Origin: Macrostomum hystrix | Taxonomy: Eukaryota; Animalia; Platyhelminthes | Length of the DNA stretch: 64,000 nucleotides | Assembly (NCBI GenBank): GCA_950097015.1 | Contig: CATNEN010000002.1 | Coordinates: forward strand, 4,774,001-4,838,000 | Reading direction: 5' to 3' | Shown: one piece after another, positions 11,330 to 64,000 of the stretch | Position numbering within the stretch: the first letter of the stretch is position 1 | Layout of the letters: every line of letters starts with the position of its first letter | Notes under the pieces: generated by a model | What the model was told of the DNA's origin: nothing | The model's database searches: none | Seen by the model: the letters and a program-made list of their open reading frames with translations, nothing else | Program-made: the position numbers and the translations under genes

Positions 11330-11690
11330 GAAATGGCATATCATTCTGTGACACTAGACCCACAGCTAGCAACAGTAAGGAGCCAATTCGGCCCATTTTG
11401 TCAACTCTGAGCATGTTAGTCAAGCATACACATACACATACTCAAGCATGAGCATTCACTACTATCTGCAGCCACATACATAGTCACATAGGGGTGTGTA
11501 TAACTGTTCTGAATTTCTCATTGTTAGGCAGTGCAACTTCATTGTGCCTTGGAGGTTAGCCCTCAAAGGCCTAATTTGTGACAAACTTTTCTCTATAACT
11601 GTACCCCAAATGAACATGGCCTTGCCACAGAATCAAGCTCAGGGACCTTAGTGCTAGAAGCGAACACATTAACCAATCTGCCACTCACCC
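11330..11690 (-). mobile_element. Degenerate copy of a tRNA-derived SINE
   Basis: Shares gtgacactagaccc..., ...aggcagtg...cactgtgccttggaggttagccctcaa and the head region with the other copies. Confidence 0.7.
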
Positions 11691-12628
11691 CCTGATTGTA
11701 ACCAAAGTTGGTTATAGAAAAGATAACATGTTGAAGGTTGATGTTTAAGGTTTATAGCCAACTTAAGTTAATTAGGCCTATGGCTTTTAATTTCACATAG
11801 TATTTTTCTGTAGACTCCTAAATAAAAGAAAAATCACCAAATTTTACCCTTACTATATTTTTATTTTTCCACATTACCTCACCTTTGTTTATAATCACTT
11901 TCATGCATATACAGTGATATACTCCAATGAAATTATTGTAAGCCAAAGCTAGTAATATTTGTTGTTAAAACGAATTCCCCGAAGTACTGGGAGCGGGTCA
12001 GTTCCGAGGAACTCTGCCGCTATATTTTTTAATATATTTAATCGAAATTCATTTAAAATATACAAGCAATTCGATATAGATATTTTATACGAATATTGAA
12101 AATAAAAATAAAACAATAAAACAAAAATTCAATATTTGGGCACGCATTGGAAGATAAAAGGGGAGAAATATACAAAGGGAATCCCGCACAAAGAAGGGAT
12201 GTAATAAAAAAAGGAAATCTAAAAAGCATGCATGCAAGATATTTGTGAGCGCAATTAAAAGCAATTAGAATATTTGTTAGCAAAAATAGAAAATAAAAGT
12301 AGTAAATTAAAACATGAAATGCGAATTAAAAACATTTCTGGGCAATGCGGTACATATTACGTATAAAAATAGGCAAAAGTAAAAAGAAAGGATTTATTTG
12401 GGAATTAAAAACTCTGGTGTGTAAAGAGCTAGCAGTTTATGAGCAAATAGCAACATAACAAAAGCAAAAAGTACTTTTTAGGCAATAAAATCACGTTAAT
12501 CAGTTTGAAAAAACGTAAAGAATATAATATCATAGCAGCTGAGCACTGCTCACCAGCCCTCTTGAGCTCAGGCAGCTATTTGAGTTTCATTTTGGCTTTC
12601 TTTCAGGGCCATAGGTGTCAGAGACTGC

Positions 12629-22918: not shown

Positions 22919-24600
22919 CAAGGGCTGTCCAAAAATAGTGAAATAATTGATAAAGTGAGCAATTATATTAGCAATTTGCAACAAGCTAAGTGTCAAACAA
23001 TTGATTAACATTTATTGAATTTACAGCTCTAAAATTGAATTCATCAGTATCAACTTTTAGAAATTAACAAAAAGTTAGAGGACCTAGACCATAGTTTTAC
23101 GCAAAACTATGTTTTAACATCACTTAGCATCTCAATCACCACCAACAGAAATCTTAGCGACAAAGTCCCTATTGAGCTGGTAACATTTTCTTCATAGGTA
23201 TTAGAGATGATTTGTAGCCTCTGCATAGCTCTGCCATAGGATTTGATGCAGTAGGACTTGCTAAACTTCCACCTCCAGATTGTCTCGTCTTTCAAAGATG
23301 TAACCTTGTATGTGCTTTTTCATCAGTGGGAATATTGCAGTTACTTGGACCAAGATCAGGCAAGTAGGGTGGATTGGAGAAAATTACAAATTTAAGTCTT
23401 TTGATAAGCTCAATGGTCTTCTTGGCTGTATCAGGCCAAGAATTATTGTTGAAGTTGGCTTTAAGTTGGCATGGTGTTTTGCATCACTGCTCTGAGTTTA
23501 TGGTCATCTTTTCTTCTAGTAAATCAATTGTCAGTGGGCCTTCACAATCAAAAAACTAAGTAAACATATCTTCTTTGAATGATAGTTGTGCTTCACCTTT
23601 ACAGGTGGATCACAGCCCCTTTGAGTCCAGACCTTGCTTTCCTATTCTAAAGTGAAGATTCCAGATTTCAACTCTAGTCACAATCAACTGGAACAAATCA
23701 TCCTAGCCACCACTGGCATGCAAATATCAATGGTTCTTCTGGTAAATAGTTTTTCTCATCATCTTCATTATGTTTGTAAGGAATAATTGCACCTAGCAAG
23801 CTGTCTGCTTAATGAGCCTGACATCTTTAGACCATGATCAGTTGGATAGAGTTTCTTGGACAGTTCAAATGGTCCAATACTTCTCTCACAGTGACTCAAT
23901 GTTTTTGATCAATCAGTAATCTCACCTGGTCTGCAAGATTTTTTGTTGGGGAGATTAGTCAACCTTACTTGCAGGTGTCGTTGCTAACATCCATTCCTTC
24001 CATTCTTGAGGGGGTCAGTGGCAGAGCAGTTATTGCCTTTGCCATTTGCACCACTGTCCCTAAGTTCGATTCCATGGCGATGCCACATTTATTTGGGGCG
24101 CAGCCACAGAGAGAAGGCTTGGGGACTTGTCATGCAATTTGCGCCCTTGAGGGCCAACCTTCAAGGCACAGTGAAATGTACAACTGCCTGACAATGAGAA
24201 AGTCAGCGCAGAGGTACACACCTGTGTGAGCATATTGCCTGCGTACAGTATCTGTGTGCATGTGTGATCAGGAGTCAGCAAAATGGGCTGAATTGCCTCC
24301 TCGCTGGCTGCTGGTCTAATGCCACTAAGTGATGTACCACTGCCCGCAGCCCTCCAGCAATTATTTATTATTTTTATTGTTATTAATCTCACCTTGGTCT
24401 GCAAGATTTTTTGTTGGGCAGATTAGTCAACCTTATTTGCAGGTGTCATTGCTAACATCCATTCCTTCTATTCTTGAAGTCTTTACTCCATTGCTAGAAA
24501 GCAGACTTGATCTGCCATGGGATCCACTGGGAATAAATTAATTGATGCTGTCCTTTTGATACCAAAGCTGAGTGTCGTGTTGGATTAAGATTTTGGAAGT
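22919..24600 (-). mobile_element. Decayed mariner (Tc1/mariner) DNA transposon, interrupted by a SINE
   Basis: TA+CAAGGGCTGTCCAAAAAT TIR-like end at 22917. Minus-strand fragments FKNGR, IVTRVEIWNLHF (cf. IVTGDETW), FFDCEG, NNNSWPDTA (cf. HDNARPHTA), NPPYLPDLGPSN (cf. HPPYSPDLAPSD), RKC...RDFV. Many stops and frameshifts; the left boundary is firm, the right is approximate. Confidence 0.8.
24010..24383 (+). mobile_element. tRNA-derived SINE flanked by a ~93-bp direct repeat
   Basis: A-box-like tggcagagcagtta, B-box gttcgattcc, (tta/ttta) tail; direct repeat at 23917-24009 and 24384-24477. Confidence 0.85.
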
Positions 24601-24889: not shown

Positions 24890-25455
24890 CCAGCAGCCAG
24901 GGAGATGCAATTCTGCCCATTGAACAGACTTGAGAACACCCACGCACACCCAGACAGTGTGAACATATGCTCTGAATTATTTAGGCAGGCCATGTACACT
25001 CCCACTGTGCATTGGTGGTTGGCCCTCAAAGGCCTAAGTTGCACAGTAAGTCCCAAGCATTCTTTCAGCGGCTGCGCCCCAAATTAATGTGGCCTTGTCG
25101 AATGCGAATTAAGAATAATAATTGCAGGAAGGCTGTGGGCAGTAGCACGTTATTTGATAGCACTAGACCCGCAACTAGCGAAGAGGCAATTCTGCCCATT
25201 TCGCGGACTCCCTAAACACAGATGCAGACAGGTACTGTACTAAGCCATATATTCACACTGATGTGTACATCTGCCCTGACTTTCTCATTGTCAGGCAGTG
25301 TGCACTCTCACTTTGCTTTTGTGGTTGACCCTCTTAGGCGAATTTGCACGACAAGCCCCCAAGCCTTCTTTGCACAGCTGCGCCGCGAAATCGGGCTCAG
25401 GCAGCATGGTGCGAGAGGCAAACGCGTTAGACCTTTCTGCCACTCACCCTCCCTT
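24890..25455 (-). mobile_element. Two adjacent SINE copies (partial ~24890-25100, near full ~25105-25455) in intron 2
   Basis: Same body as the other copies; (aat) tail remnant at ~25110; head ...gcgagaggcaaacgcgtt...ctgccac at the right end. Confidence 0.8.
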
Positions 25456-35044: not shown

Positions 35045-38000
35045 TCACTGATCGCGCGGCTCAGGTGGCGGCAGATCGAATCCTTGCCTCTCGAGCTCCA
35101 GCCGAACACCGGGGCTTGCCCTGGCTGCCAGCTGCTTGATTCTGTTTCTGCGGTCGCCATCATGCTGCTCGGTGTGGTCCATGAGAAATTTCACGCAACT
35201 CAGGTTGCTGCGATAAACGGCATACATCAGAGGCGTTGAACCGTTGACATCCACTGCGTCCAGATATCCTCCATTCTGGGAAAGAAGTTCTAGGATTTCG
35301 GTCCGGCCGGCAACAACTGCGAGGTGCGCAGCTGTCAGGCGCCTATTATTGGATTTATTTAAATCGCATCGTCCGCTGCCAAGCAGGAATTTAGCCATGT
35401 CTTTGAATCCCTGGCGACAAGCGTACATGAGCCCGGTGGTGCCATCATTATCTGGGTCGTCAAGAGGCAATTCCTGATCGTGCGCAAACTTGACAATGTC
35501 GATAAAAGCATTCTTGTTTGAAACAATGCAAGCCAGATGTACAATATCTCGACCCATCGCATTTTTGTGGTGAATGTTGCAGCCGTACTCCAGAAGCAGC
35601 TTCAAGGACTCCAGGTGACCTGTGCTGGCACATTCCAGTATCGGAGTGTCTCCATCAAGATCCTGTGAGTCCATGGGGGCATTGTTTTCCTTCAAGAAGC
35701 GCAGCAGATGACAATGTCCGAAAAAAGCTGCACTTTGTGCCAGACTATTTTTGTGATTGTTGCTGGCATTTTGCCAGTCTGGCATGCCGGAAATCGCTTT
35801 TTGAACCATGTGTAGATTGCCTGAAGCAATGGCGAATCGCACAGTTTCTTCTCCAGTGTTCTCGTTAACATCTCTCATCGGCGCTCCTCTCTTTAACAGC
35901 CAGTCCGTCATGTGCTGGTGACCGCTCTGGACTGACAGGTGGATGATGCAGTCGGGAAGTCCTGGATCAGCCGCGTTCTGGTGCAGAAAGCTTGCAGCCT
36001 CTTCCTGTCCGTTAAGTACCGCGCATTGAAACGGCGTCAATTTCTGAGCATTTTCCGTCACGATGCAAGCAGGATTGGTGTCTAAAATGTGCTGCAGGAT
36101 GTGCAGGTTTCCATGAATTGCTGCATAGTGCGCGCTATTGCTCTGGTTGCCGCAGGTTGCTTCACACTTGTAGCCTTTGCTCTGCAAATATTTGAACATA
36201 TCCAAATTGCCAATGGCTGCCGCCAGGTGCAGTGGAGACTTGCTAGGCTCCGGTTCCACGGCATCCGGCTGAAAAACAATTTTGCAATGCTCGAAAAGCC
36301 ACTGCACCAGTTTAAGCTTGTTCTCAACCACCGCCACGTGCAGAGGTGTGCGGCCACTCGAGTTTCGCAGATCTGTCCGGCACTGTAACTCCAAAAGTAC
36401 TTCGGCCATATCTAGTCTACCCATTATGATCGCCTGGTGGAACGCAGTGTTACAATCAGAATCTTGGTCGTTTAGAATTTCTCTAAGGAAAGTGCACTTT
36501 GGGTTGGCTCTCAAAGCTTTCAGCAATTGAATGTCACCAGCCCAAACCACTGTGTGAACAATCGTCTGGCTGCTTTCAGTTTTCTTTCCATCGAAGCCGT
36601 TGTCGAGAAGAAACTCGAGTTGCTTGAGGCTTCGATGCTTGAAAATATCTTTCAACTTCAATTGGCCCACGACATGCTCAATGCTAAGCTGCGCACCTTT
36701 CTCATGAAGAAGCTCGATCGATTTCACGCAGTTCAGCGCTACTGCCAACGAAAGGGCAGACAAGCCCTTCTTATTAGTGGCAGTGGCGTCTGCACCTCGG
36801 TCCAGCAGCAACTGGACGGCCCTTTCTTTCCCGTGTCGAATAGCACTGAAGAGAGGCGTTTCACCATCGTTGTCGACGGGATCAACTCGAGCATTTTGCG
36901 ACAGTAGAAACTGGATGATCGCTCTGCTTCCTACTTTCGCTGCAAAGTGAAGCGCCGCTTCGCCTTTAAGATTCGCAAAGTTCACATTAGCGCCCGAGTC
37001 GAACAACGCCTGCAGACACTTGATCGCAGCCTTCTTGGAAATACATCCTGGAGGTAATTTGCTCTTTACAAGGTGTTTAGGAAGTTCCTTCGTCTTTGCA
37101 ACAATGTCAAGAAGTTTGGGCTTTATGGAATCCTGCCGACGAATGCCCTCTTCGATGGACCTCTTCAAGTCTTCCAGGTGTTCGTTTGTCTCCCTCTCAA
37201 ACACCTTTACTTTGTCCAGTTTCGACGTGCACGGCTTGGCACAGATGGTGTGAGCTGCATTGTTTCCCTCATTGTTGACCTCCTCAGCTTTTGCTCCAGC
37301 CTTCAGCAGCAGAGGGATAAGCTTTAGGTGGGAATTCTTCGCCGCAACTATCAGAGCGGAGTCACCAAGCGCATTCTTGTAGTTGACATGAACTTTCTGC
37401 TGAATAAGGTAGCTCGCAATGTCTTCGTGTCCACTGGCGCATGCAATCGTCAGACAGTTTTCACCTAAAGTAGTTCGGCTGCTCAGCGACATCAGACCTT
37501 GAATCTCCTGGAGAATCTTCAGATTTCCGGCCTCGCAAGCAAGATGGGCGATGCTGCGTCCTTCCTGATCGAAGGTTTCGTCGATTCTGCCTCCTTTGCT
37601 ACGAAGCGCTGCCAGAACTGAATCGCTGCCGATTTTGACGCTAAGCATCACAGGAGACGTACTGGTCTCATCAAGAGCATTGGGATCAAGTTTTTGTTCC
37701 AAAATAAATTGTATTGCCTCTTGGTGCGGATTCTTTCCTTCAACGGCATAGTGGAGAACAGTTTTAAGGGCTTTGTCTGTTGCAGCGACAGAGCAGCCAG
37801 CGTCAGACAAAAGGAAGAATAAGAAATTCTTGTCCTGCTTTGCAGCAGCCAGAAAGACAGGCGTGACGTCGTTCAGATCCAGCTGGTTCACCTTCGCGCC
37901 GCTGCTGTAAAGGAGCTTTAATAGGTCCATGGATCCCGACTCGCAGGCGAAATGAGCGGGTGTTCGTCCATTGCGCGCGACAGCGTTAACGTCGGCTTTC

Positions 38001-40147
38001 TTATTGATGAGGAACCTGGCCATTTCAAGCTTATTGTTTGAGCAGGCGATCATGAGTGGCGTAATGCCATTGTTGTCCTCCTGGTCTAAAGCGCAACCAA
38101 ACAAAGAGAAGAACTGGACAATCTTGAGATTGCCGCTCTTCACTGCCAGGTGAACTACATTTTCACCTCTGTGATTTCGTCGATTCACATCGGCACCAAC
38201 AGACTTTAGGACTGTAATTAGAGATTCGCTGCCTTGAGCAGCGCTGATCATAAATGGAGTCATTCCGTCTTGGTCATGTGTGTCAAATGGACACCCAATA
38301 TCCAGCAGATGCATCAAGGCATCGTTCTCCTTCAGCATGCATGCGTAGTGCATTGCGTTTTTTAACTTCTTGTTTGTTGCCTGGATTTCGCAGCCAATTT
38401 TAGTGAGAAACTGGAGGATCTCGTAAGTCTTCTTGTGCTTTAAGGCCTCTAAAAGAAGGGTATTGCCGGCATTATCGATCGTGCGCGGATCCGCCCCCTT
38501 TTCAGTCAAATACTTGACTATGTCTAGTTTCCCAGACGACACAGCATGATGGAGAGCAGTCTTGCCTGATCTATCCTTGTGATCTATTGAACAAAGATTG
38601 GCTTTGCTTGTCAGCACCTTGATAGCGTCGAATGCTCCATTCCTGACAGATATAATGAGCGGTGTCATTCCGTTTGAGTCAGGTTCATCAAGGCAGATCT
38701 TCTTTTCACGAAGAAAATTTAAAAGTGCCACATTATTTTCCTTCACCGCGTAGAATGCAACAGTGTGCCCGTTTGCGTCCTTGGCATCGAGCCGACAGCC
38801 CTTCTCCGCCAGATAACGAACCATTGACAAAGACTTGTTACGTGCTGCGCACAGAATGGCCGTCTCTCCCGTGCGATTTGGTATGTCAAGTTCAGCGCCC
38901 TTTTCGCCAAGCATCATGAGGATGTCTTCTTGCTTGTTATGAGCTGCCCTAAGCGCTGGCGTCACACCTCGACGATTTCTGGCGTTTAAATCGCAGCCGT
39001 GGTCGATTAGAAATTCAACAGCCTGGATCGGGCCTTTCTGGCTGATAGCAAGGAGTGTTGTCTCTCCGGATTCAGCATCCTGCTCGTTGAGATTGACATT
39101 GTGCTCGGCGAGAAATCGGAAGAATTCAACTATCTCCGTTTGCCTTACAGATGCGGCCATGAGAGCAAGATTTCCTTGTTCTTCGTGAGGTTCTAAAGAA
39201 CATCCTTGTTCTACCAAGTATTTAAAGAGCTCAAAAGAGCCTTGAGCGATCGCCAGCTGGACAGGAGTGATATTTTGCTTGTCTTTCTTGAAGATTGGGG
39301 CGCCTTTTTCGCGCAAGAGTTTCAAGATGTCTAAGTGCCCGGTAAGAATGGCAGTCTTGGTAAACTCTTCATTCTGAGACACGTCGCAGTCGTTGTCAAG
39401 CATGTACTTCACAGCGTCACAGTAACCATTTTGAACGGCACATCTCAGCGGACTGCGACCATCATCTTCAACCTTGTCGCTGTACTTCACCTTGAAGTAC
39501 TGGAGCATCTCAGTGTGACCGCAGAGGCCAGCCTGAGAGGCCAGTATCAGCTTATGCCGATAAGCGACGTCGCAGTTCTGATCGTGCATGAAGCGCACGA
39601 CCTTCACCCAGTTCTTTGTGACAGCTTTTGCCAGAATGCTAGTTGTTGGCTCTTCACTCAGCTGATGAATGCAGGATCGCTTCTCTTCCAACAACTTGGC
39701 AATCTTGGTGTGGCCGTTAAACAGAGCGTAAAACACGGCTGTCAAGCCGTCATTAGTCTTTTTTGAAACATCGACATCCCGATCAAGGAGCTGGGTGACG
39801 ATCACGGCGCTGCCGACTTGTGCAGCGCACATGAGCGGTGTTATCCCGCTGTTGTCGCTTTTTTCTGGATCGGCCCCTCTGTTGAGCAGGGTGCTGAACA
39901 CATCCTGGTGGCTGGAGAGAGCGGCAAAGTGCAAGCCTGACCGACCTTCTTCGTTTGTGACATCTGGACTCATGCCTTTCAGAAGAAAGGCGTGCACGGA
40001 ACGGTTATTGCCTGCTGCGATAGAAGAGAAGAATAATTTATTTTCCACCTTCTCTTTTTCTGCCAATATGTTCGCCTCATTTCTCATGATTTCTCGTTGT
40101 CCCCGCTGCATCAGCCTTGCTAGGGACTGGCGGAGGTCCTCTTCCAT
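35045..40147 (-). CDS. Giant ankyrin-repeat protein (~1700 aa, roughly 40+ repeats) encoded almost entirely by one exon
   Basis: Uninterrupted ORF full of TPLxxA/LHxAxxxG motifs. Acceptor ttcattccatgcag just upstream, probable start MEEDL at 40147. A donor gtgagt at 35048 suggests a small last exon from ~35005. Confidence 0.9.
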   Translation of the reverse strand: MEEDLRQSLARLMQRGQREIMRNEANILAEKEKVENKLFFSSIAAGNNRSVHAFLLKGMSPDVTNEEGRSGLHFAALSSHQDVFSTLLNRGADPEKSDNSGITPLMCAAQVGSAVIVTQLLDRDVDVSKKTNDGLTAVFYALFNGHTKIAKLLEEKRSCIHQLSEEPTTSILAKAVTKNWVKVVRFMHDQNCDVAYRHKLILASQAGLCGHTEMLQYFKVKYSDKVEDDGRSPLRCAVQNGYCDAVKYMLDNDCDVSQNEEFTKTAILTGHLDILKLLREKGAPIFKKDKQNITPVQLAIAQGSFELFKYLVEQGCSLEPHEEQGNLALMAASVRQTEIVEFFRFLAEHNVNLNEQDAESGETTLLAISQKGPIQAVEFLIDHGCDLNARNRRGVTPALRAAHNKQEDILMMLGEKGAELDIPNRTGETAILCAARNKSLSMVRYLAEKGCRLDAKDANGHTVAFYAVKENNVALLNFLREKKICLDEPDSNGMTPLIISVRNGAFDAIKVLTSKANLCSIDHKDRSGKTALHHAVSSGKLDIVKYLTEKGADPRTIDNAGNTLLLEALKHKKTYEILQFLTKIGCEIQATNKKLKNAMHYACMLKENDALMHLLDIGCPFDTHDQDGMTPFMISAAQGSESLITVLKSVGADVNRRNHRGENVVHLAVKSGNLKIVQFFSLFGCALDQEDNNGITPLMIACSNNKLEMARFLINKKADVNAVARNGRTPAHFACESGSMDLLKLLYSSGAKVNQLDLNDVTPVFLAAAKQDKNFLFFLLSDAGCSVAATDKALKTVLHYAVEGKNPHQEAIQFILEQKLDPNALDETSTSPVMLSVKIGSDSVLAALRSKGGRIDETFDQEGRSIAHLACEAGNLKILQEIQGLMSLSSRTTLGENCLTIACASGHEDIASYLIQQKVHVNYKNALGDSALIVAAKNSHLKLIPLLLKAGAKAEEVNNEGNNAAHTICAKPCTSKLDKVKVFERETNEHLEDLKRSIEEGIRRQDSIKPKLLDIVAKTKELPKHLVKSKLPPGCISKKAAIKCLQALFDSGANVNFANLKGEAALHFAAKVGSRAIIQFLLSQNARVDPVDNDGETPLFSAIRHGKERAVQLLLDRGADATATNKKGLSALSLAVALNCVKSIELLHEKGAQLSIEHVVGQLKLKDIFKHRSLKQLEFLLDNGFDGKKTESSQTIVHTVVWAGDIQLLKALRANPKCTFLREILNDQDSDCNTAFHQAIIMGRLDMAEVLLELQCRTDLRNSSGRTPLHVAVVENKLKLVQWLFEHCKIVFQPDAVEPEPSKSPLHLAAAIGNLDMFKYLQSKGYKCEATCGNQSNSAHYAAIHGNLHILQHILDTNPACIVTENAQKLTPFQCAVLNGQEEAASFLHQNAADPGLPDCIIHLSVQSGHQHMTDWLLKRGAPMRDVNENTGEETVRFAIASGNLHMVQKAISGMPDWQNASNNHKNSLAQSAAFFGHCHLLRFLKENNAPMDSQDLDGDTPILECASTGHLESLKLLLEYGCNIHHKNAMGRDIVHLACIVSNKNAFIDIVKFAHDQELPLDDPDNDGTTGLMYACRQGFKDMAKFLLGSGRCDLNKSNNRRLTAAHLAVVAGRTEILELLSQNGGYLDAVDVNGSTPLMYAVYRSNLSCVKFLMDHTEQHDGDRRNRIKQLAARASPGVRLELERQGFDLPPPEPRDQ

Positions 40148-41164: not shown

Positions 41165-41478
41165 TTGCATTGCTGTTTCGGCGCATTTGCCTCTCGCACC
41201 AAGGAGACTGAGCTCGAATTCGCGGCGAGGCCGGGCTTATTTTGCCGTGGAAAGAAGGCTTGGGTTGCTTGTCGAGCAATTTGCGCCCTTGGCCTTGAGG
41301 GTCAGCCTCCAAGGCACAGTGAGAGTGTACACTACCTGGCGATGAGAAAGCCAGGGCAGTTGTAAACACCTGTATGAGTATGTGCTCAGAAGTCATCGGA
41401 ATAGACAGAATCGCCTTTCGCTGGCTGCGTGTCTACTGTCACCAAATGATGTGCCATTGCCCACAGCCCACAGCATAC
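41165..41478 (+). mobile_element. Diverged SINE copy
   Basis: gcatttgcctctcgcacc...ctcgaattcgcggcgaggcc head and shared body. Confidence 0.75.
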
Positions 41479-45989: not shown

Positions 45990-46730
45990 TAATGCCACCC
46001 GCTGCCAGCGGTTCTTCTTGCTGTATAACGCCGAGACCTGGACCATGACGGACGCCTAGGAGAGGCAGCTGGACGCTGTGATGCTGCGTGCGGCATTCGG
46101 GGTGCGCAACGGCCCGGGCAGCGAGACCATAATGGTAATAATAATAATAATAATAAAAATAATAATAATAACTGCAGGAGGGCTGCGGGCAATAGCACAC
46201 CATTTAGTGACACTAGACCCGCAGCCAGTGAGGAGGCAATTCTGCTCATTTCGCTGACTCTTGAGCACACACACACACACACACACACAGATGCTGTACG
46301 CTGGCACACGCTGACACAGGTGTATACATCTGCCCTGACTTTCTTATTATCAGGCAGTGTACATTTCACTGTGCCTTGAAGGTTGGCCCTCAAGGGCCAC
46401 TAAAATTGCACGACAAGCCACCAAGCCTTCTCTCCGCGGCTGCGCCCTAATAAATGTGGCCTCGCCGTGGAATCGAACTTAGGGACCTCGGTGCGAGAGG
46501 CAAACGCGTTAACCGCTCTGCCACCGACCCCCAGGCAGCGAGACCAATGCCGCGCTCTACGCAATGGCCTGACGTGGCCTTTTGACCTGCTGCGCAAGCG
46601 GCGACTTTGACTGGGTGGCCACGTCATCCGGTCGGAGGCTAAGCCGCTACGCGACGTGCTGCTGCTCAAGCTGCAGGGACCGCGCAGGCGAGGCCAAGGG
46701 CGAACGGCGAGATTTCCTGACCGCTGGCGC
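45990..46730 (+). mobile_element. 3' remnant of an RTE-clade LINE, split by a SINE
   Basis: FLLYNAETWTMT...LDAVMLRAAFGV...ETNAALY...KRRL.LGGHVIR...GPRRRGQGR matches the RTE ORF C-terminus (LLYGxETW...RRLxxxGHxxR...GxRxRGR); contains stops. Confidence 0.75.
46130..46533 (-). mobile_element. tRNA-derived SINE with 13-bp TSD and (ATT)n tail
   Basis: TSD ggcagcgagacca at 46117-46129 and 46534-46546; head GGCAGAGCGGTTAACGCG...GTTCGATTCC; internal (CA)n. Confidence 0.9.
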
Positions 46731-53208: not shown

Positions 53209-53262
53209 ATAACCCATCAAATTACAAAACATTCATTAGCATAAATGAAAACTATCACGCAC

Positions 53263-53562
53263 CCCTTCAATGGAGATCTTGGTGCTGTTCAGTGACGTCA
53301 GTGACCGCAGGAACAGGCCCACATAGACACTGCTGTGGTTCCAATGGGACACCAGCACGCGAACTCGGGTGCCGTTCATGGCGGCTGTGCGCAGAGCCGA
53401 GTCGATGACCCCCCAGAACTCGCGCTGGTGCGGGTTGTTCTGAATGGCGGCCTCATAGTCCATCACGGCTATGTGGACAAACTTCCGAGCCGATAGGATG
53501 GCACTGACAATGGCGTCAATGTCACGTGACCAGCCGCTGGGAGTCAGCTGTGCCGGTGACAC
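53263..53562 (-). CDS. PLD3: PLD3-like exon 4
   Basis: VSPAQLTPSGWSRDIDAI...FVHIAVMDY...FWGVIDSALRTAA...RVRVLVSHW; acceptor tctctcag, donor gtgcgt; phase 0/0. Confidence 0.88.
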
Positions 53563-53659
53563 CTGAGAGATTGACCGATTTTTTGGAGATTCCAAAATGA
53601 GCTAAGGTGATTCCATAATTTTATTGAGGCGATTCTAAAAACTAGATTCGGAAGACGAT

Positions 53660-53960
53660 TAGACAGATACCAGAAATCCATTGGGAAGATTCCAGAAATC
53701 TATTTGGAAGACTCCAGAACCCGATTGGGAAGATTCCAGAACCCGATTGGGAAGATTCCAGAAATCTGTTGAAAATATTCCAGAAATCGATTGGGAAGAT
53801 TCCAGAAATCGATTTGGAAGATTCCAGAAATCGATTTGGAAGATTCCAGACATCGACTGGGAAGATTCCAGAAATCGATTGGGAAGATTCCAGAAATCGA
53901 TTAAGAAGATTCCAGAAATCGATTGAGAAGACTCCAGAAATCGATTGGGAAGATTCCACT
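53660..53960. repeat. 22-bp minisatellite (gaagattccagaaatcgattgg) in PLD3-like intron 3
   Basis: Tandem units seen directly. Confidence 0.9.
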
Positions 53961-54123
53961 TAAAATCGCTAATATTCTATTCAAGCCGGGAAGATTTCAT
54001 CTAGCTAGCAAAGCTGGAAGGAATTAGTTTAAATTTCTCTGAAATTTGAATATTCTGTGAGACTTAGCTAAAGAAGATTTTGCAGATAGCTGCTAAGTCA
54101 AAGAAGAAAACCGGCTCACTCAC

Positions 54124-54321
54124 ACCCAGGTAGATGGAGTACTTGAAGCTGCCAACACTGGCAATCCACGGATGGCTGGCGTTGAAGGCGGCAGCGAGTT
54201 CGTTAGGCCAGCTGGCTGGAATTCGATTCCGTTTGCCCACCAGCCAGTAGGTCCAGAAGACTTTGTTCAGCTCGCCTACCAGAATTGGACAGCCTTCAAA
54301 TAGAATGCCGAGCTCCTTCAC
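54124..54321 (-). CDS. PLD3: PLD3-like exon 3
   Basis: VKELGILFEGCPILVGELNKVFWTYW...WP...FN...IYLG; acceptor gtccag, donor gtgagt. Confidence 0.88.
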
Positions 54322-54369
54322 CTGGACAATGGGCACCGAGTTTCAGTGAGATTAATCATTGGATTGAGA

Positions 54370-55335
54370 TGGAGAGAAGTAGAGTTGGAGGAAGAGAAGT
54401 AGAGTTAGAGGGAAGTAGAGTTAGGTGGAAGTAGAGTTAAAGAGAGAGAAGCAGAGTTAGAGGGAGAGAAGCAGAGTTAGAGGGAGAGAAGCAGAGTCGC
54501 AGGGAGAGAATTAAAGTCGCAGGGAGAGAAGTAGAGTCGCAGGGAGAGAATTAAAGTCGCAGGGAGAGAAGTAGAGTCGGAGGGAAAGAAGTAGAGTCGG
54601 AGGGAGAGAAATAGAGTGGAGTAGAGAAGTAGAGTAAAGTAGAGAAGTAGGGTGGGGGTAGAGAAGTAGAATGGGGGTAGAGAAGTAGAATTGGGGTAGA
54701 GAAGTAGAATGGGGGTAGATAAGTAGGGTGGGGGTAGAGAAGTAGGATTGGGTAGAGAAGTAGGGTGGGGGTAGAGAAGTAGAGTAAAGTAGAGAAGTAG
54801 GGTGGGGGTAGAGAAGTAGAATTGGGGTAGAGAAGTAGAATTGGGGTAGAGAAGTAGAATGGGGGTAGATAAGTAGGGTGGGGGTAGAGAAGTAGGATTG
54901 GGTAGAGAAGTAGGGTGGGGGTAGAGAAGTAGGGTGGGGTTAGGGTAGAGAAGTCGAATGGGGATAGATAAGTAGGGTGGGGGTAGAGAAGTAGAATGGG
55001 GGTAGATAAGTAGGGTGGGGGTAGAGAAGTAGGGTGGGGTTAGGGTAGAGAAGTCGAATGGGGATAGATAAGTAGGGTGGGGGTAGAGAAGTAGAATGGG
55101 GGTAGATAAGTAGGGTGGGGGTAGAGAAGTAGGGTGGGGTAGAGAAGTAGGGTGGGGGTAGAGAAGTAGGGAGGGGTTAGTGTAGAGAAGTCGAATGGGG
55201 ATAGATAAGTAGGGTGGGGGTAGAGAAGTAGAATGGGGGTAGATAAGTAGGGTGGGGGTAGAGAAGTAGAATGGGGGTTATATAAGTAGGGTGGGGGTAG
55301 AGAAGTAGGGTGGGGGTAGAGAAGTAGGATGGGGG
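54370..55335. repeat. Purine/G-rich minisatellite (gggtgggggtagagaagta-type) in PLD3-like intron 2
   Basis: Seen directly; G-run rich on the + strand. Confidence 0.9.
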
Positions 55336-55355
55336 TTGAAAGTTTCATGTTTCAC

Positions 55356-55607
55356 CTGGGTGAGGGATCGCCAGTCGATGTTTGAGCTGCCCAGGTAGGC
55401 ATGCCTGCCGTCTGCCAGGACCATCTTGGCATGCTGAACTCCCCCGCCGAGCAGTTCGTGGATGTTGACCCGGACCACGTGGACATTGGGCTGCTCAGCC
55501 AGCTGCTCCAGATCGCTTTCGTTGAAATTGAAGCCGCCGATATTGTTGGCGATGAGCACTGGGACCTGCTGGCTTCGATTTATCACCGCTGAGAACAACT
55601 GCTCACC
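55356..55607 (-). CDS. PLD3: PLD3-like exon 2 (first HKD motif)
   Basis: GEQLF...GGGVQHAKMVLADGRHAYLGSSNIDWRSLTQ, with HxK(x4)D and the DWRSLTQVKELG signature completed across the intron. Confidence 0.92.
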
Positions 55608-55669
55608 CTGGATTGTTGAGGTTGGGGATTGTCGATTTGACATGTGAGAAACAGGTGCAAATTCGGGAG

Positions 55670-56100
55670 AAACAGGTAGGGAATGGGAGGAACAGGTAGG
55701 GAATCGGAGGAACAGGTAGGGAATGGGAGTAATAGGTAGGGAATGGGAGGAACAGGTAGGGAATGGGAGTAATAGGTAGGAAATGGGAGGAACAGGTAGG
55801 GAATGGGAGTAATAGGTAGGGAATGGGAGGAACAGGTAGGGAATGGGAGTAATAGGTAGGAAATGGGAGGAACAAGTGGGGAAGGAGGAACAGGTGGGGA
55901 ATGGGAGGAACAGGTGGGGAAGGAGGAACAGGTGGGGAAGGAGGAACAAGTGGGGAATGGGAGGAACAAGTGGGGAAGGAGGAACAGGTGGGGAAGGAGG
56001 AACAAGTGGGGAATGGGAGGAACAAGTGGGGAAGGAGGAACAGGTGGGGAAGGAGGAACATGTGGGGAATGGGAGGAACAGGTGGGGAAGGAGGAACAGG
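55670..56100. repeat. Purine-rich minisatellite (ggaggaacaggt(a/g)gggaatg-type) in PLD3-like intron 1
   Basis: Seen directly. Confidence 0.9.
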
Positions 56101-56125
56101 GTGAACATGAGCTGTGCCCCCTTAC

Positions 56126-56425
56126 CTTAAAGGCTAAATTTCCGGGTTTCTGCATAATATCGTAGCCTTTCAATGACCAATAGAATGACGCAAACTTGAG
56201 TTCCTTGATTGCGGCGCCAACCAGGAACTGGTAGGCGGAATAGGTGCTCATGTGCTCAGCTGTCGTGTTGGCAAAGGTGAGATTCTCCGGAATAGTTTCC
56301 ACAAGGGACAGGCTGCAGTCATGGTCAGGCTCTGGCTCGTAGAAGAGTGTTTTGGCGAAGCTGCTGCTAGAGCAGGCTGTCAAAAACAATAACAGCAGAA
56401 AAATTCTCATGGCTGGCTTCTTCAT
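56126..56425 (-). CDS. PLD3: PLD3-like exon 1 with signal-peptide-like N-terminus
   Basis: MKKPAMRIFLLLLFLTACSSSSFA...CSLSLVETIPENL...ASFYWSL; donor gtaagg. The start may be 56425 or 56410. Confidence 0.88.
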
Positions 56426-56799
56426 TCTTCTTTTGAGTTGAATAATGAATTTAAGCATGCGACATGCAGGGCTCTAGTTATTTAGACCTTACCGATTCAG
56501 ACGAGACAAAGCTGTGCCCATGTGCGTGTGTTCATGTGCGTTTCCCACAAGCCTTATCTCCTTCCCCCCCAACCGCCCGTCATTTCATTATGTACATTCA
56601 ATGTACACTCATTTCTAGATTCTACAGTCATACCTGCCTTACTAAAATGCGCGACTTGACTCCGAGAGATAAGGCAAAGGCAATTGCTAAGTAAACAAGT
56701 AGCTGAAAATAATTTCTTGAAGCGAAGGTCACAAATCTGAAAGAGAACTTCTTGTTATGCATAGCGACTCGAAATTTGCAAAGCGAGATTATGAGTCCG

Positions 56800-57320
56800 G
56801 GTGATATGAAGGGATGCAGGGTGATATGAATAGATGCAGGGTGATATGAAGGGATGCAGGGTGATATGAATAGATGCAGGGTGATATGAAGGGATGCAGG
56901 GTGATATGAATAGATGCAGGGTGATATAAATAGATGCAGGGTGATATAAATAGATGCAGGGTGATATAAATAGATGCAGGGTGATATAAATAGATGCAGG
57001 GTGATATAAATAGATGCAGGGTGATATAAATAGATGCAGGGTGATATGAAGGGATGCAGGGTGATATGAAGGGATGCAGGGTGATATAAATAGATGCAGG
57101 GTGATATGAAGGGATGCAGGGTGATATAAATAGATGCAGGGTGATATGAAGGGATGCAGGGTGATATAAATAGATGCAGGGTGATATGAAGGGATGCAGG
57201 GTGATATGAAAAAATGCATGGTAATATGAAGAGAGGAAGGGTAATATGCAGAGAGGAAGGGAAATATGCAGAGAGGAAGGGAAATATGCAGAGAGGAAGG
57301 GAAATATGAAGGGAGGAAGG
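56800..57320. repeat. 20-bp minisatellite (gcagggtgatat(g/a)aa(gg/ta)gat) in the divergent intergenic region
   Basis: Seen directly. Confidence 0.92.
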
Positions 57321-57848
57321 TCCAAGTCACGTCCAAGTCATGTATTAGGCGATTTTGTGATAATCTAGAAATTATAAATGCTTCATATGCTTCCATTTAT
57401 ATTTAGAAACTAAATGCAGCATAGAATAGTGTCCTCGATTCCTTATCAGATTTAAGTAGCTAGGCTAAATTTCGCAATGACTTTGCTATGCGAAACACTA
57501 ATAGACAACAGACTGTGTTAGGTATTGATTGCACTTATTCTTTGCAAACACTGTCTCCAAAAAAAATAACTGTGAAGCTTAGAAAGCAAAATGATTGTGG
57601 CATATTTTTCTTTCTTTTTTGAATTGACTGCCATGTACTCAGAGTACAATTATTTAGCGGTAATAGGAGACGAAAAAATTAAACTGTACAGTTTGTTGCT
57701 TGTTACCCTGAGTCACCCAACCAGGCCTTTTACGCAATGTACTGTACCACCCTTAACCAGCTCATTTCCTGACGTTCCTTTCCTGATAAAAAGACGTTTT
57801 AATTCAGCATTCCACTCAATGCTTTTAATTAGCTGCGTACACACAGTC

Positions 57849-59989
57849 ATGGAAGTGCTCTGGCGAGCCCTGAGAACAGTCGCTGTTGTGCTCATGCAAG
57901 CGGTTGGATGCGCGGTGGAGCATAGCAACCCTGTAACTGACCAGCAGATTCTGATGGCCGTGGTGTCGGATAATCTGGAGACCATTGTGCAGTACCTTCG
58001 GCAGCCCGCTAATGTTGACAGACGCTTCCTGATCCGGGGTCAGCTGTTGTCTCCACTGCATCTGGCTTGTCAGCTGGGAAAGCTAAGCGTTGTCAAACTG
58101 TTTATTCAGGCGAAGGCAGACGTCAATATCACTGGGGGAGAACACGGCTACTCGCCGCTTCACTTTGCATCGCACTTCGGTCATCAGTCAGTTTTAGACC
58201 TGCTCATCTGTGCTCAGGCGAATGTCAACAGTCAGGACTCTGATGGCTACTCTCCTCTGTACATTGCATCGAACTTCGGTCACCAGAGTATCGTGGAAAC
58301 CCTAGTCAGAGCGCTCGCAGACCCTGACCTAGCTAGCAATACAGGCGAGTCGTCGCTCTACATTGCATCAAACTTTGGTCACCAGAAAGTTGTGGACGCA
58401 CTTTTAAAGGCCCAAGCCGATGTCAATATTCAAGAGAGGAGCAATGGCTCTTCATCCCTGTACATCGCATCTCAGAATGGCCATTGGCTAGTTGTGGACT
58501 CCCTCATCAAAGCGCAAGCCGACGTCGATCTAGTAGAAAATGACGGATTCTCAGCGCTGTACATCGCATCTCAGAATGGTCACCTGAGGGTCGTCGATTT
58601 ACTAATACAGGGACAAGCCGACGTAAACCTGAAAGAAAAGTCTTTCGGCTCATCAGCAATCTATATCGCATCACAGAATGGTCATGAAAACATCGTTGAC
58701 CTTCTCATCAATGCCCAAGCTGATGTCAACTTTCACGTTGCGCGAAACGGATACTCAGCGATTTACTACGCTTCCAGGCAAGGCCGTGCGAATGTCGTGC
58801 ACCTGCTCATTAAAGCCGGAGCCAATGTCAACATTCAGGCAAACACTGGCGAGTCCCCGATTTTGATTGCTTCACTGTACGGTCATCTGAAAGTTGTGGA
58901 CACGCTCATCAAAGCAAAAGCCGACGTCAATCTTCAAGCCAGCAATGGATTTTCGCCTCTCCACGTTGCAGCCCAAGCTGGTCATCAGCAAGTGCTGGAG
59001 CTACTGATCAAAGCAGGAGCCAAACTCGATATTCGATCGCAAAATGGCGAGTCACCGCTTTACATTGCGTCACAGAATGGCCATCGTGATGTTGTTTATT
59101 CACTTGCCCAATCAAAAGCTGACGTCAATCTGCAGAGAAACAATGGCGAGTCACCTCTCTACATTGCGTCGCAAAACGGACATCAGACAGTTGTGGACTT
59201 GCTCATCAGATTCAAAGCGAACTGCAATCTTCAAAGCAACACTGGTGCGGCTTCAATCTATACAGCATCGCATTTCGGACATCAGCAAGTTGTGAAGTCC
59301 TTGGTTAAAGCCGAGGCTGATGTTGATCTTCAAATGAACTCTGGCGACTCACCTCTCTTTATTGCTTCACATTTCGGGCACCATAAGGTTGTGGCGGTTC
59401 TCATCGACGCTCAGGCTGATGTAAACCTTCAAAACAAAGCGGGCGAGTCACCTGTCTACACCGCTTCAGCTGGCGGACATAAGGAAGCAGTCGACTTACT
59501 CATCGGAGCGCAAGCTGATGTCAATCTTCCAGAAAAGCACGGAGTCTCCCCCCTTTTCATTGCATCTCAGGATGGCCACCTGAGTGTTGTGAAATCGCTT
59601 TTAAAAGCGCAAGCTCATGTCGATCGTCAGACAAATACCAGATCTTCGCCGCTTTACATTGCATCGCAGAACGGCCATCAGCTTGTCGTGGACTCGCTAT
59701 TAGAGGCAGAAGCAGACGTAAACATTCAGACCAACTCCGGCTGTTCGTCCCTTTACATAGCCTCACAAAATGGTCACAATAGCATTGTTAAGTCACTAAT
59801 CAGAGCGCAGGCCCAAATCGATCTTCGAACAGACAATGGGTTGTCGCCACTCGATGTCGCCTCGTACTTCGGTCATAATGAAGTCGTTCGCTCTCTCACA
59901 AATGCACTTTTATACGGCTGCATTTCAAGTCTGAAGCACGAACTGAGTGCTTCAAATTCTGAAAGCGCGTCTCTTCAGCTGGAAGTATT
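57849..59989 (+). CDS. ANK-cGLR gene, exon encoding about 19 ankyrin repeats
   Basis: Highly self-similar SPLYIASQNGHxxVVxxLxxAxADVN units. Donor gtaagc at 59990 (phase 2) precedes the ORF stop. The start Met is uncertain; 57849 is preferred. Confidence 0.88.
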
Positions 59990-60538
59990 GTAAGCTCGAC
60001 GATGATTGCATGATAGTCGAATGCATTACACCTTTAACAGAAAAAAGACACGTTATTTTTCCCCCATGGGGAATTTCAAATACCCACTGCCTACTTCACG
60101 ATAGCTCCCGAATTTATGAATTTAGGAGGATTGGATAAGATGCAGACATGCCTGGTGTGGTGCCATTCTTGGAAAAGGATGAAGTTGGGTGCCAGCTCGT
60201 CGGGACTGCGCGGTCGCACTCCGTTGAAGGTCCCGACTGTCGCCGCCGATGCTCCAGACCGTGATGGTGTGAAGCCACCATGGTTCCATTAAGAAACATT
60301 ATGAGCTGAAAAAATATGTCCATATTGGGGATTTTGCAATCTGACACCCCGACGAGAATCTTTGAATATCTCGATGATGGAGATGCTTTATCATTACAGA
60401 AACTGTTTTATCTTGTAGAGCCGAAAATGTTAGCCTGTGCTCAGCATTTTCATAACGATTGGTTGAATATCTGGGAATTTGAAATTACCGGTCTTTCTAT
60501 TGTTAACTGAGCTTTTATTTTTACTTCAATTATTTCAG

Positions 60539-60882
60539 TCTTGCGCCAAGCGAAGAGGACCTGAGCCGGCAGCTCCACAATGCGCTCACCCAGTCAGGCT
60601 TCGCCAGGTCCAGAGCCGTCCTGCAGACAGCAATCGCTGACGTCTTGCAAGAGATTCTCAGAAAGAGGCTGAACGGCTGCGAAATATTTGTCGTTGGAAG
60701 CTACTCCGAAGGCTGGGGCAACAATTTGAAAATGCTGGACGGTCGAACTGACATTGAATCAGACATTGACGTGATGAGTCTGTTTCAGGGCATGCTGCAT
60801 CATCAAACAGATGCGTGCGAGTGCGATGGAGACCCAGTAAAGCACAAATACTTCAATGGGCACCTGCTCTGTCCTGGATTCA
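60539..60882 (+). CDS. ANK-cGLR gene, nucleotidyltransferase N-lobe exon (Mab-21/cGAS-like)
   Basis: Acceptor ttcaattatttcag; phase-2 join TT|T; FVVGSYSEGWG...ESDIDVM is the GS + DxD motif; donor gtaagt at 60883 (phase 1). Confidence 0.85.
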
Positions 60883-61157
60883 GTAAGTTTTCAGCCTTTG
60901 AGTAAATTTTTGTCTCAAACTGATGCTGCCCCTGGGTAAAGACCATGATGGTATTTCCAATACCCACTGTCTAATTAGCAATAGCTTCCAAACCGAATGA
61001 CCGATTTCCGTGAATAGAAAGTTAATCTTCCGTGAATCTGAACAAAAAGTTTTATGAACCTTTGATGAACAAATATTCAAAGCCGTTCGAGTCAATGTTG
61101 TCCAGACATTCACCGGTTCTTGTCGGAGACCCTGGCGACAATGAAAACTGTGTATCT

Positions 61158-62216
61158 AACATTACTGTGTATCAACTAACATTACTGTGTATCAACTAAC
61201 ATTACTGTGTATCAACTAACATTACTGTGTATCAACTAACATTACTGTGTATCAACTAACACTACTGTGTATCAACTAACATTAATGTGTATCAACTAAC
61301 ACTACTGTGTATCAACTAACATTACTGTGTATCAACTAACATTACTGTGTATCAACTAACACTACTGTGTATCAACTAACACTACTGTGTATCAACTAAC
61401 ATTACTGTGTATCAACTAACATTACTGTGTATCAACTAACATTACTGTGTATCAACTAACATTACTGTGTATCAACTAACATTACTGTGTATCAACTAAC
61501 ATTACTGTGTATCAACTAACATTACTGTGTATCAACTAACATTACTGTGTATCAACTAACATTACTGTGTATCAACTAACATTACTGTGTATCAACTAAC
61601 ATTACTGTGTATCAACTAACATTACTGTGTATCAACTAACATTACTGTGTATCAACTAACATTACTGTGTATCAACTAACATTACTGTGTATCAACTAAC
61701 ATTACTGTGTATCAACTAACATTACTGTGTATCAACTAACATTACTGTGTATCAACTAACATTACTGTGTATCAACTAACACTACTGTGTATCAACTAAC
61801 ATTACTGTGTATCAACTAACATTACTGTGTATCAACTAACACTACTGTGTATCAACTAACACTACTGTGTATCAACTAACATTACTGTGTATCAACTAAC
61901 ATTACTGTGTATCAACTAACATTACTGTGTATCAACTAACATTACTGTGTATCAACTAACATTACTGTGTATCAACCAACATTACTGTGTATCAACTAAC
62001 ACTACTGTGTATCAACTAACATTACTGTGTATCAACTAACACTACTGTGTATCAACTAACATTACTGTGTATCAACTAACATTACTGTGTATCAACTAAC
62101 ATTACTGTGTATCAACTAACATTACTGTGTATCAACTAACATTACTGTGTATCAACTAACATTACTGTGTATCAACTAACATTACTGTGTATCAACTAAC
62201 ATTACTGTGTATCAAC
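61158..62216. repeat. Very homogeneous 20-bp minisatellite (attactgtgtatcaactaac) in an ANK-cGLR intron
   Basis: About 53 near-identical units. Confidence 0.96.
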
Positions 62217-62585
62217 CTCCAAATTGATAAAAAAAACAGTTTAATCAATCCAAAAGAGTCAACAATGATAGCCGATATGATTAAATGATGAAATTTCGTG
62301 AAAATATTTGTTGCCACCAGACACCCGACGAGAATCGTTGAATATCTCGACGATGCCGATGTTTTTTGGTTCTGGAAGTTGTTTCATCGGATAGAGCGGA
62401 AAACTTTAACGCGTGTTCTGGATTTTCATGAGGATTGGTTGAATATCTTGGGAGATGCAGAAAAATGAAAAATGTTAATTTGGTATTTTAAATCCCCTAT
62501 ATTTCTACAGTTAATATACAGGTAGCGAAGTAATTAAAAAAGTTCCTTCTAAAAATAGCAACCACATTTCACTGCAACCTACCAG

Positions 62586-63595
62586 CATCGAATCCAGCGC
62601 GGCCATCGTACGGCTCTGCTCTGAGGCCGGCCGTGGACCATGTCTCCGCTGGTCGTCTCTGTCGCTACCCGACCATCGCGCTGCTGCAGCCAGATCCAGT
62701 CTCGGAATCGCACATTCCTAAAACTTTGCTTCAGGATCTCAAGCGGGATATTTCTCCCAACAGCTCGTCGCCATGTCACGTGGTTCATGCAGCCTCTCCT
62801 GGTCGAGGCGGAGATGAGCTTCGTGTCAGCACTAGCTTCCTTGAGAAGCGGATGCTCAGAAGCCTCACCACTCTGCAAGGTCAACTGTTCATTACACTCA
62901 AGTACCTGGTCAAGAAGGTGATTTGCCACAAAGACTTCTACAATGTGCAAGGTTTGAAGCCGTATCACGTGAAGACAATCACATTCCGAATGCTGGAGCA
63001 AACACCCGCTGACGAGTGGAAGCCGGACAATCTCGTCAGTCTCGTGAGGCGGTCGCTGGAGATGCTGCTTGGTTGTGTTGAGAGCGGCTGCACATCCGGC
63101 AATACGCATGGGCGGATAATGGAGCACTTTTTCCTGGCTGACGCGGCTCTTTACCTCAAAGGTATCAACCAGAAAGAGTCTGAGAAGATTCTGAGCAATA
63201 TTGCAAGCACATTGAGAAAAGTAATCGATAAGCTGCCTCAGCTGCTGCTCCAGTTTGTGCGCTATCTCAAGCCCTTAAGTGAGTCTGGCAGGTTCTACTT
63301 CCATCCGTTTCAAATCCTGCCAGATATCAGGCCATTGCCCGTGACAATGTCGGGCAGGCTCGAGTATCACGGCATCTACGGTGTAGCAAGGGAGTGCATA
63401 CTGCGACTCTCGCATAAAGACTGCAGCCTGCAATCTCAAGAGAGTCTCACGGAGTTGATCGCGAGACTGCCAGACTGCGCCTTCACGGCAAGAGAGGCTC
63501 TCAGAGCGCTGGCGTGTCTCAAGTTCGGCTACCGAGGGACAGCGGAGAAAATCTTGAGCCAGTGCAGGCGCCACTCAGTGAGCAGAGGTATGGAT
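62586..63595 (+). CDS. ANK-cGLR gene, Mab-21 C-lobe exon, interrupted by a SINE; the original frame resumes at ~63975
   Basis: Acceptor caacctaccag; phase-1 join. AVDHVSA (third Asp), LRVSTSFLEK, LKYL, KPYHVKT, FRMLEQTP..W...NL...L..LL.CV, MEHFF fit the Mab-21 consensus. Confidence 0.85.
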
Positions 63596-63973
63596 AGTAA
63601 TAATAATAATAATAATAGTAATAATAATAATTGCAGCAGGGCTGCGGGCAATGGCACAACGCTTGGTGATACTAGACCCGCAGCCAGCGAGGAGGCAATT
63701 TAGCCATTTTCGCTGACTCCTGAGCACACCCGCACACAGATAGTGTACGCAGGAATACGCTCACACAGGTGTGTACATCTGCCCTGACTTTCTAATCGCC
63801 AGGCGGTGTACACTTTCACCGTTCCTTGGAAGTTAGCCCTATTATGGGCGAAAGCCTTGACAAGCCTTCTCGCTGCGACAGCGCCCTAATTTAATGTGAC
63901 CTCGTCGCGGAATCGAGCTCAGGGACGTTGGCGCGAGAGACAAACGCGTTAACCACTCTGCAATTCACCCCCT
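63596..63973 (-). mobile_element. tRNA-derived SINE inserted in coding sequence, ~10-bp TSD
   Basis: TSD aggtatggat (63586-63595) / aggtattgat (63974-63983); (ATT)n tail; A/B-box head. Confidence 0.9.
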
Positions 63974-64000
63974 AGGTATTGATTGGTCGTTTGATAGATC

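Follow-up and report, generated by a model that had tools for sequence, protein, structure and literature searches.

The 64,000-nt stretch of the Macrostomum hystrix genome analysed here (hereafter the window; positions 4,774,001–4,838,000 of contig CATNEN010000002.1, assembly GCA_950097015.1) ends in a gene, on the + strand from position 57849, in which an array of ankyrin repeats is joined to a nucleotidyltransferase of the Mab-21 and cGAS type. On the evidence below, this is very probably an expressed ankyrin-fused cGAS-like receptor (ANK-cGLR) gene with at least four exons, the third intron of which resembles a short interspersed nuclear element (SINE), and it comes from a large expansion of such genes in Macrostomum. 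The members of this expansion carry ankyrin arrays of varying length before a diverged Mab-21/cGAS-type nucleotidyltransferase.

Gene structure and expression

Exon 1 (57849–59989) begins with the ATG at 57849, which lies within an 800-codon open reading frame (ORF; 57591–59993, +), encodes the ankyrin repeats downstream of that ATG and a short linker, and ends in phase 2. Its donor, GTAAG, stands right after 59989, and the acceptor CAG right before 60539; intron 1 between them (59990–60538, 549 nt, GT..AG) holds pieces of high-copy repeats. Exon 2 (60539–60882), which encodes the start of the nucleotidyltransferase with its N-terminal helix and opening strands, ends in phase 1 with GTAAGT right after 60882, and intron 2 (60883–62585, 1703 nt, GTAAGT..CAG), with a 20-bp minisatellite inside, brings its CAG right before 62586. 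Exon 3 (62586–63587) carries the third catalytic aspartate (D846), the Mab-21_C lobe (about 62897–63202) and the first part of a C-terminal domain (from about 63251). A probable intron 3 (63588–63975), consisting of the SINE-like repeat with GT..AG ends, holds the stop codon of the ORF at 63701–63703, and exon 4 would start at 63976 (63976–64000, G-IDWSFDRS..) and continue past the end of the window.

The original prediction, made from the letters of the window, had joined three + strand exons in frame at canonical sites in phases 2 and 1, and had remarked that the ORF track hides the spliced architecture. Both points are confirmed: the segments 57849–59989, 60539–60882 and 62586–63703 join into 3603 nt with zero internal stops. 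The three-exon end implied by that model is not supported, because the stop at 63703 sits inside the SINE-like insertion, which is probably an intron, and a fourth exon most likely follows from 63976. The gene probably spans at least four exons, with its 3′ end beyond the window, and about 150 C-terminal residues would probably be encoded there.

Evidence for expression came from four public runs, all from a single study, each of which contains 68–70% of the sampled words of the stretch and 42–50 million contig letters. From their small size and their spliced contigs we infer that these are transcriptomes. The contig alignment covered 57800–61150 only, so the acceptor at 62586 and the segment 63588–63975 lie outside the aligned part. 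In each run (4/4), one contig with 0 mismatches covers exon 1 and joins 59989 to 60539, skipping 59990–60538 with its GT..AG borders. Three of the four contigs cover exon 2, exit exactly at 60882 and extend 1497–1721 nt beyond, and that of the fourth run stops within exon 2, at 60863. These contigs thus show junction 1 and the junction 2 donor directly, and the gene is expressed and spliced at junction 1. The contigs begin at 57840 (X3), 57842 (X4), 57857 (X1) and 57870 (X2), with no additional letters upstream; in the transcript as far as observed, 57849 is therefore the earliest ATG, and the shortest 5′ untranslated stretch observed is 57840–57848 (+). The transcript check that had been proposed for both junctions thus found junction 1 and the donor at 60882 in contigs, and the acceptor at 62586 is placed by colinearity with Macrostomum lignano.

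The closest annotated relative is M. lignano BOX15_Mlig029835g1 (P0001, 1168 aa). Exon 2 is 67% identical to its residues 569–682 and exon 3, without gaps, 69% identical to residues 684–1018; P0001 is colinear across junction 2 (..PGF-x-SNPA..), the single residue between the two alignments being the split codon. At the M. lignano locus, introns 1 and 2 lie after the same codons and in the same phases as in the window (borders ..TC/GTAAGT ... CAG/G.. and ..TTCG/GTAAGA ... CAG/CA..), and exon 3 is unbroken over residues 683–1168, with no intron at the site of 63588–63975. For the tail of exon 1 (query residues 620–713), the best match in a collection of 5.8 billion proteins is again from M. lignano, at 52% identity. 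All of the relative clusters looked up are M. lignano proteins (10/10), and every relative scanned by Pfam has an N-terminal ankyrin array (7/7). P0001 and its paralogues share with the window gene the order of ankyrin array, linker, cGAS-like enzyme and C-terminal domain, with an enzyme part that is 67–69% identical and has at most one gap. P0001 differs in its last repeats and linker (about 52% identity over query residues 620–713), in its number of repeats and in the absence of an interruption where the window has the SINE-like element, and it belongs to another species.

A cGAS-like enzyme domain with an apparently intact active site

Pfam profiles were run exon by exon. Exon 3 matched Mab-21_C (PF20266) with 28.6 bits against a cut-off of 24.1 (E 1.7e-6, residues 104–205), which bears out the Mab-21 C-lobe of the original prediction; relatives scored 21–31 bits. 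On the N-lobe, Pfam gave only a weak MTPAP-like palm match (E 0.008–0.03). A phmmer search with exon 3 against 1.84 billion cluster representatives returned 167 proteins, 76 of them at E<=1e-10, and among ten distant matches that were scanned, nine carry both Pfam Mab-21 and Mab-21_C and the tenth Mab-21_C only. Searched against solved structures, the family profile matched cGLR1 (8gjy, 4e-6), cGAS (1e-5) and MAB21L1 (0.039), through the C-lobe only.

The structure of the M. lignano relative (P0001:560–1168) was predicted with AlphaFold from a 39-row alignment, with a mean predicted local distance difference test (pLDDT) score of 92.4 and a predicted TM-score (pTM) of 0.93. The 50 matches listed by Foldseek against the PDB were all cGAS or Cv-cGLR1, with probability 1.0. 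VIA-align aligned 277 residues of the model with human cGAS (model 17–346 against cGAS 162–521; Z 20.0, root-mean-square deviation (rmsd) 3.7 Å), followed by MB21D2 (Z 19.4) and Cv-cGLR1 (Z 19.3). The model of this 67–69% identical relative predicts a bilobal cGAS-like fold over both lobes. Human and mouse cGAS, human MB21D2 and Cv-cGLR1 from Crassostrea virginica share with it the bilobal Pol-beta-type fold (Z 19.3–20.0 over 270–284 residues, rmsd 3.5–4.0 Å) and the pattern of G-S and acidic triad. They differ in sequence (13–19% identity), and their aligned chains (337–403 residues) are the catalytic domain only; in the window protein this domain stands between an ankyrin array of ~690 aa at the N-terminus and a ~260-aa domain at the C-terminus. 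The comparison with cGAS that had been suggested earlier thus gave a whole-domain match at Z 20.0 for P0001.

The window has the motifs GSYSEG, SDIDVM and VDHVSA, each of which aligns with its conserved family column or columns (G-S, D-x-D and D). G767-S768 (60696–60701, exon 2) comes directly after the first strand, D789 (60762–60764) and D791 (60768–60770) stand at the start of the second strand, also in exon 2, and D846 (62636–62638) lies on a later strand in exon 3. In the 39-row alignment these columns hold G in 38/38 rows, S in 37/38, D in 34/38, D in 34/38 and D in 31/36, and the window has all five. In the P0001 model, G61/S62 follow the strand 57–60, the D-x-D stands at the start of the strand 83–97, and the third D is on the strand 139–148. 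Judged by these columns, the G-S, D-x-D and D pattern is the Pol-beta/cGAS signature, intact in the window, and the predicted retention of three catalytic acidic positions is upheld, with D789, D791 and D846 in conserved columns. An N-lobe family profile run against solved structures found no solved cGAS and nothing related.

Also in the N-lobe (exons 2–3) is a His/Cys quartet, H802, C809, H822 and C854 (alignment columns H96, C103, H117 and C149), kept in 31–36 of about 36 family rows. It may form a structural zinc site, placed differently from the zinc thumb of cGAS.

The ankyrin array and the C-terminal domain

On exon 1, Pfam reported Ank at 1.9e-120 (18 stretches) and Ank_2 at 4e-151. The array comprises one cap-like and 19 regular repeats of 33–34 residues each (residues 30–693), in good agreement with the ~19 repeats first proposed. 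Among 18 aligned units (the two N-terminal ones left out), mean pairwise identity is 49% and the maximum 70%. The most variable unit positions are 1–3, 5, 13–14, 17–18 and 25–26, which are hairpin and first-helix positions, and variability at such positions would fit a binding surface. The isoelectric point (pI) of the array is acidic, at 6.1, and that of the enzyme part basic, at 8.6–8.9. A homogenised repeat array was considered and rejected, because TRF found no 99-nt period in exon 1 and the repeats average only 49% identity.

The match to cGAS ends near model residue 350, and a further ~260 aa remain (P0001:905–1168). Modelled alone, this part gave a pLDDT of 88.3 and a pTM of 0.89, with helices and a small sheet; in the window it starts near 63251 and continues beyond 64000. 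The domain list of the original prediction, ankyrin and Mab-21 only, has to be extended accordingly. A profile of the domain found no sequence match in the PDB. Atlas searches returned scores of 0.84 or less by features, which are leads only, and TM 0.39 or less by shape, and the best hit of a wide VIA-align search (Z 8.3, to helical repeats of the TPR/HEAT type) lay within the background for helical models, so that the domain was not assigned to a fold. This helical domain of ~260 aa is found only in the Macrostomum ANK-cGLR family.

A SINE-like insertion as probable third intron

Homology to all relatives ends at ..HSVSRG, that is, at nucleotide 63587. There follow GTATGG, an (ATA)n run and then ~350 nt, and the element ends with ..CCCTAG at 63975. 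Because homology stops at 63587 and a SINE-like element follows, the stop at 63703 lies inside inserted DNA. Five further copies occur in the window at 70–78% identity (46132–46532, 24009–24385, 25110–25449, 41182–41469 and 11493–11693), and ARAGORN found no tRNA in the element. The hexamer AGGTAT flanks it on both sides, like a target-site duplication, and this duplicated target appears to supply both the GT and the AG of the element. Removal of 63588–63975 gives ..S-R-G-I-D-W-S-F-D-R-S.., an exact restoration of the frame; at the same point, relatives read RGIDWPAERS (P0008), RGIVWSAEK (P0001) and RGIPWSANRS. The segment is most likely spliced out as an intron, restoring the ancestral frame exactly, and is a candidate for a transposon-made intron. 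Beyond 60882, a spliced form should comprise exon 3 (~1002 nt), some 450 nt of remaining coding sequence and an untranslated region, and the contigs, which run 1497–1721 nt past this point, are consistent with it.

The other way to read this locus is as a damaged gene, one paralogue out of a large family, either in decay or neo-functionalised. With the element retained, translation would stop at 63703 after 38 residues of junk sequence (the first being G1163, the codon of which straddles the junction), and the product would be without the larger part of the C-terminal domain. It is true that the element is a dispersed repeat that breaks an exon continuous in M. lignano, that the ORF extends into it as far as the stop at 63703, and that its splicing is a prediction. 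We nevertheless regard damage as improbable, since the GT and AG are so placed that excision restores ..SRG-IDW.. as in the relatives, the 8 codons visible downstream of the element are conserved and in an open frame, the contigs extend 1500–1720 nt past exon 2 without breaking at a high-copy repeat, and the remaining gene is without stops or frameshifts. Retention of the element would in any case spare the entire cGAS-like core, which extends to about residue 1051.

Known fusions, catalysis and sensing

Fusions of this kind are on record. Li et al. 2023 (PMC9980059) depict ankyrin- or TPR-repeat modules on some cGLRs (fig. 1C) and give 87% of cGLRs as having no appended domain. Their Table S2 lists six M. 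lignano proteins with Ank_2 (PAA67649.1, PAA58690.1, PAA68676.1, PAA86972.1, PAA45980.1 and PAA68216.1), and ANK-cGLRs of Stylophora pistillata are catalogued as well. According to Table S3 of the same paper, five M. lignano cGLRs of the clade, three of them ankyrin-fused, were cloned for a screen (numbers 89–93); the five share the signature GS..GW..L..G....D.D, and the cloned constructs look enzyme-only, apparently without the ankyrin array; the main text gives neither a product nor a ligand for them. The catalogued ANK-cGLRs have the ankyrin repeats N-terminal to the cGLR core, and the M. lignano entries carry GS[FY]x[ED][GA]W..L..G....[SA]D[IV]D. The window gene does not differ from these in kind and is a copy from an uncatalogued species. 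Although the proposed fusion of an ankyrin array to a Mab-21/cGLR nucleotidyltransferase in one spliced gene is supported, its implied novelty was overstated, given that such fusions, those of M. lignano included, stand in the 2023 catalogue. A literature search for Macrostomum with cGAS or STING returned nothing specific.

Several points weigh against the overall reading as an expressed ANK-cGLR gene. To our knowledge, nothing in the ANK-cGLR clade is known to be enzymatically active. The Pfam model Mab-21 (PF03281) matched neither exon 2 nor the intact enzyme domains of four relatives; of the profile matches anticipated, those to Ank and Mab-21_C were found and that of PF03281 to the N-lobe was not, and the N-lobe of this clade appears to be too diverged for the model. 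The model was built for the M. lignano relative rather than for the protein of the window. The equivalence of D789, D791 and D846 to E225, D227 and D319 of cGAS is argued from the motif pattern, from their position on the strands and from the structural match of the whole domain, and the acceptor at 62586 and the SINE-like intron are placed by comparison rather than by reads. The kind of the four runs is unrecorded. Finally, none of the five M. lignano enzymes is among the 15 active enzymes named in the main text of Li et al. (PMC9980059), where it is also stated that many cGLRs appear inactive in vitro, probably because they lack their ligand.

By analogy with cGAS and other cGLRs, the enzyme would be inactive at rest. 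It would be switched on by a ligand or partner, for which the ankyrin groove, the basic surface of the enzyme or the two together could be the binding site; the activated enzyme would make a cyclic di- or oligonucleotide from nucleoside triphosphates, and a downstream receptor would read this product. Tentatively, and with considerable doubt, we suggest that the ANK-cGLR expansion is a protein- or metabolite-sensing repertoire, in which a variable ankyrin groove, acting in ligand binding or as a guard, gates the cGAS-type enzyme and soluble double-STING proteins read its product. The analogue that we propose for the variable groove is recognition of the NLR or DARPin kind. The original prediction took the ankyrin array for a module of sensing or autoinhibition, possibly with a non-nucleic-acid ligand; with its basic enzyme part, the protein may equally have a nucleic-acid ligand.

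It is somewhat unlikely, though a serious possibility, that the enzyme domain itself senses nucleic acid and the ankyrin array localises, oligomerises or recruits partners. cGAS and many cGLRs sense nucleic acid through the enzyme domain, and the charge of the enzyme part, basic beside an acidic array, makes such sensing by the enzyme surface possible next to binding by the ankyrin groove. On the other side, all seven relatives scanned have kept their arrays, and the repeats vary most where a binding surface would be expected. Moreover, Li et al. (PMC9980059) added poly I:C and ISD45 dsDNA, as possible activators, to reactions of their screen where indicated, and their main text names no Macrostomum enzyme as active, the constructs apparently having been without ankyrin repeats. 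A different proposal would deny catalysis altogether and take the protein for a Mab-21-like scaffold with a cGAS fold and no second-messenger synthesis. A non-catalytic scaffold role has been proposed for MAB21L1/2, and it would agree with the lack of a clade member with shown activity, with the missing PF03281 match and with the presence of MAB21L1 among the profile matches (E 0.039). We consider it very improbable, because G-S and D-x-D-...-D are kept in the window and in 31–38 of 36–38 family rows, because the best solved matches are cGAS and cGLRs and not MAB21L1, and because Mab21L1/2/3 lack a predicted functional active site, which sets cGLRs apart according to the fig. 1 legend of Li et al. 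(PMC9980059).

If the repertoire gated by ankyrin grooves is real, no cGLR class before it would have combined a sensor domain dedicated to ligands other than nucleic acid with a defined flatworm receptor. What activates the many orphan enzymes is the main open question for cGLRs. Those with a fused ankyrin array are obvious candidates for ligands other than nucleic acid, and Macrostomum lends itself to experiments. To clone the full-length protein, and not the enzyme core alone, one would need the start, the four exons, the catalytic residues and the extra C-terminal domain as placed in the present model. The window adds a well-supported, transcribed ANK-cGLR from a second Macrostomum species, in a clade that the 2023 survey listed but left uncharacterised; taken alone, the finding leaves existing knowledge unchanged.

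Repeats and neighbouring genes

Most of intron 2 is taken up by a minisatellite (61156–62216) with the 20-bp unit CTAACATTACTGTGTATCAA in 53 copies at 98% identity. Introns 1 and 2 also share two repeat pieces in the same order (60070–60112 and 60950–60992; 60334–60475 and 62311–62451) at 77–79% identity; the first piece recurs at very high copy number among the transcript contigs (summed depth 570–800). A recent transposon origin of these two introns was rejected, because M. lignano has both at the same codons and in the same phases.

A second long ankyrin array, found by tblastn with the ankyrin part of P0001, lies on the − strand at 35180–40123; no cGAS-like segment was detected elsewhere in the window, including beside this array. 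Among the M. lignano proteins, the annotated model of the family member P0073 (PAA93319.1, 2111 aa) runs from ankyrin repeats through a cGLR-like domain and a second set of ankyrin repeats to a caspase domain at the C-terminus (Peptidase_C14, 2.8e-27), which is either a sensor–effector fusion or a merged gene model.

Upstream of the ANK-cGLR gene and head-to-head with it, the − strand carries a PLD3/4-like gene (53236–56458). Its ORFs from 53236 to 55700 match PLDc, PLDc_2 and PLDc_3 of Pfam, and 56458 is the probable ATG of its first exon. The start codons of the two genes are ~1.4 kb apart. Proline- and serine-rich low-complexity repeats occur at about 55600–56100, and a tandem repeat (56755–57396) lies in the shared upstream region.

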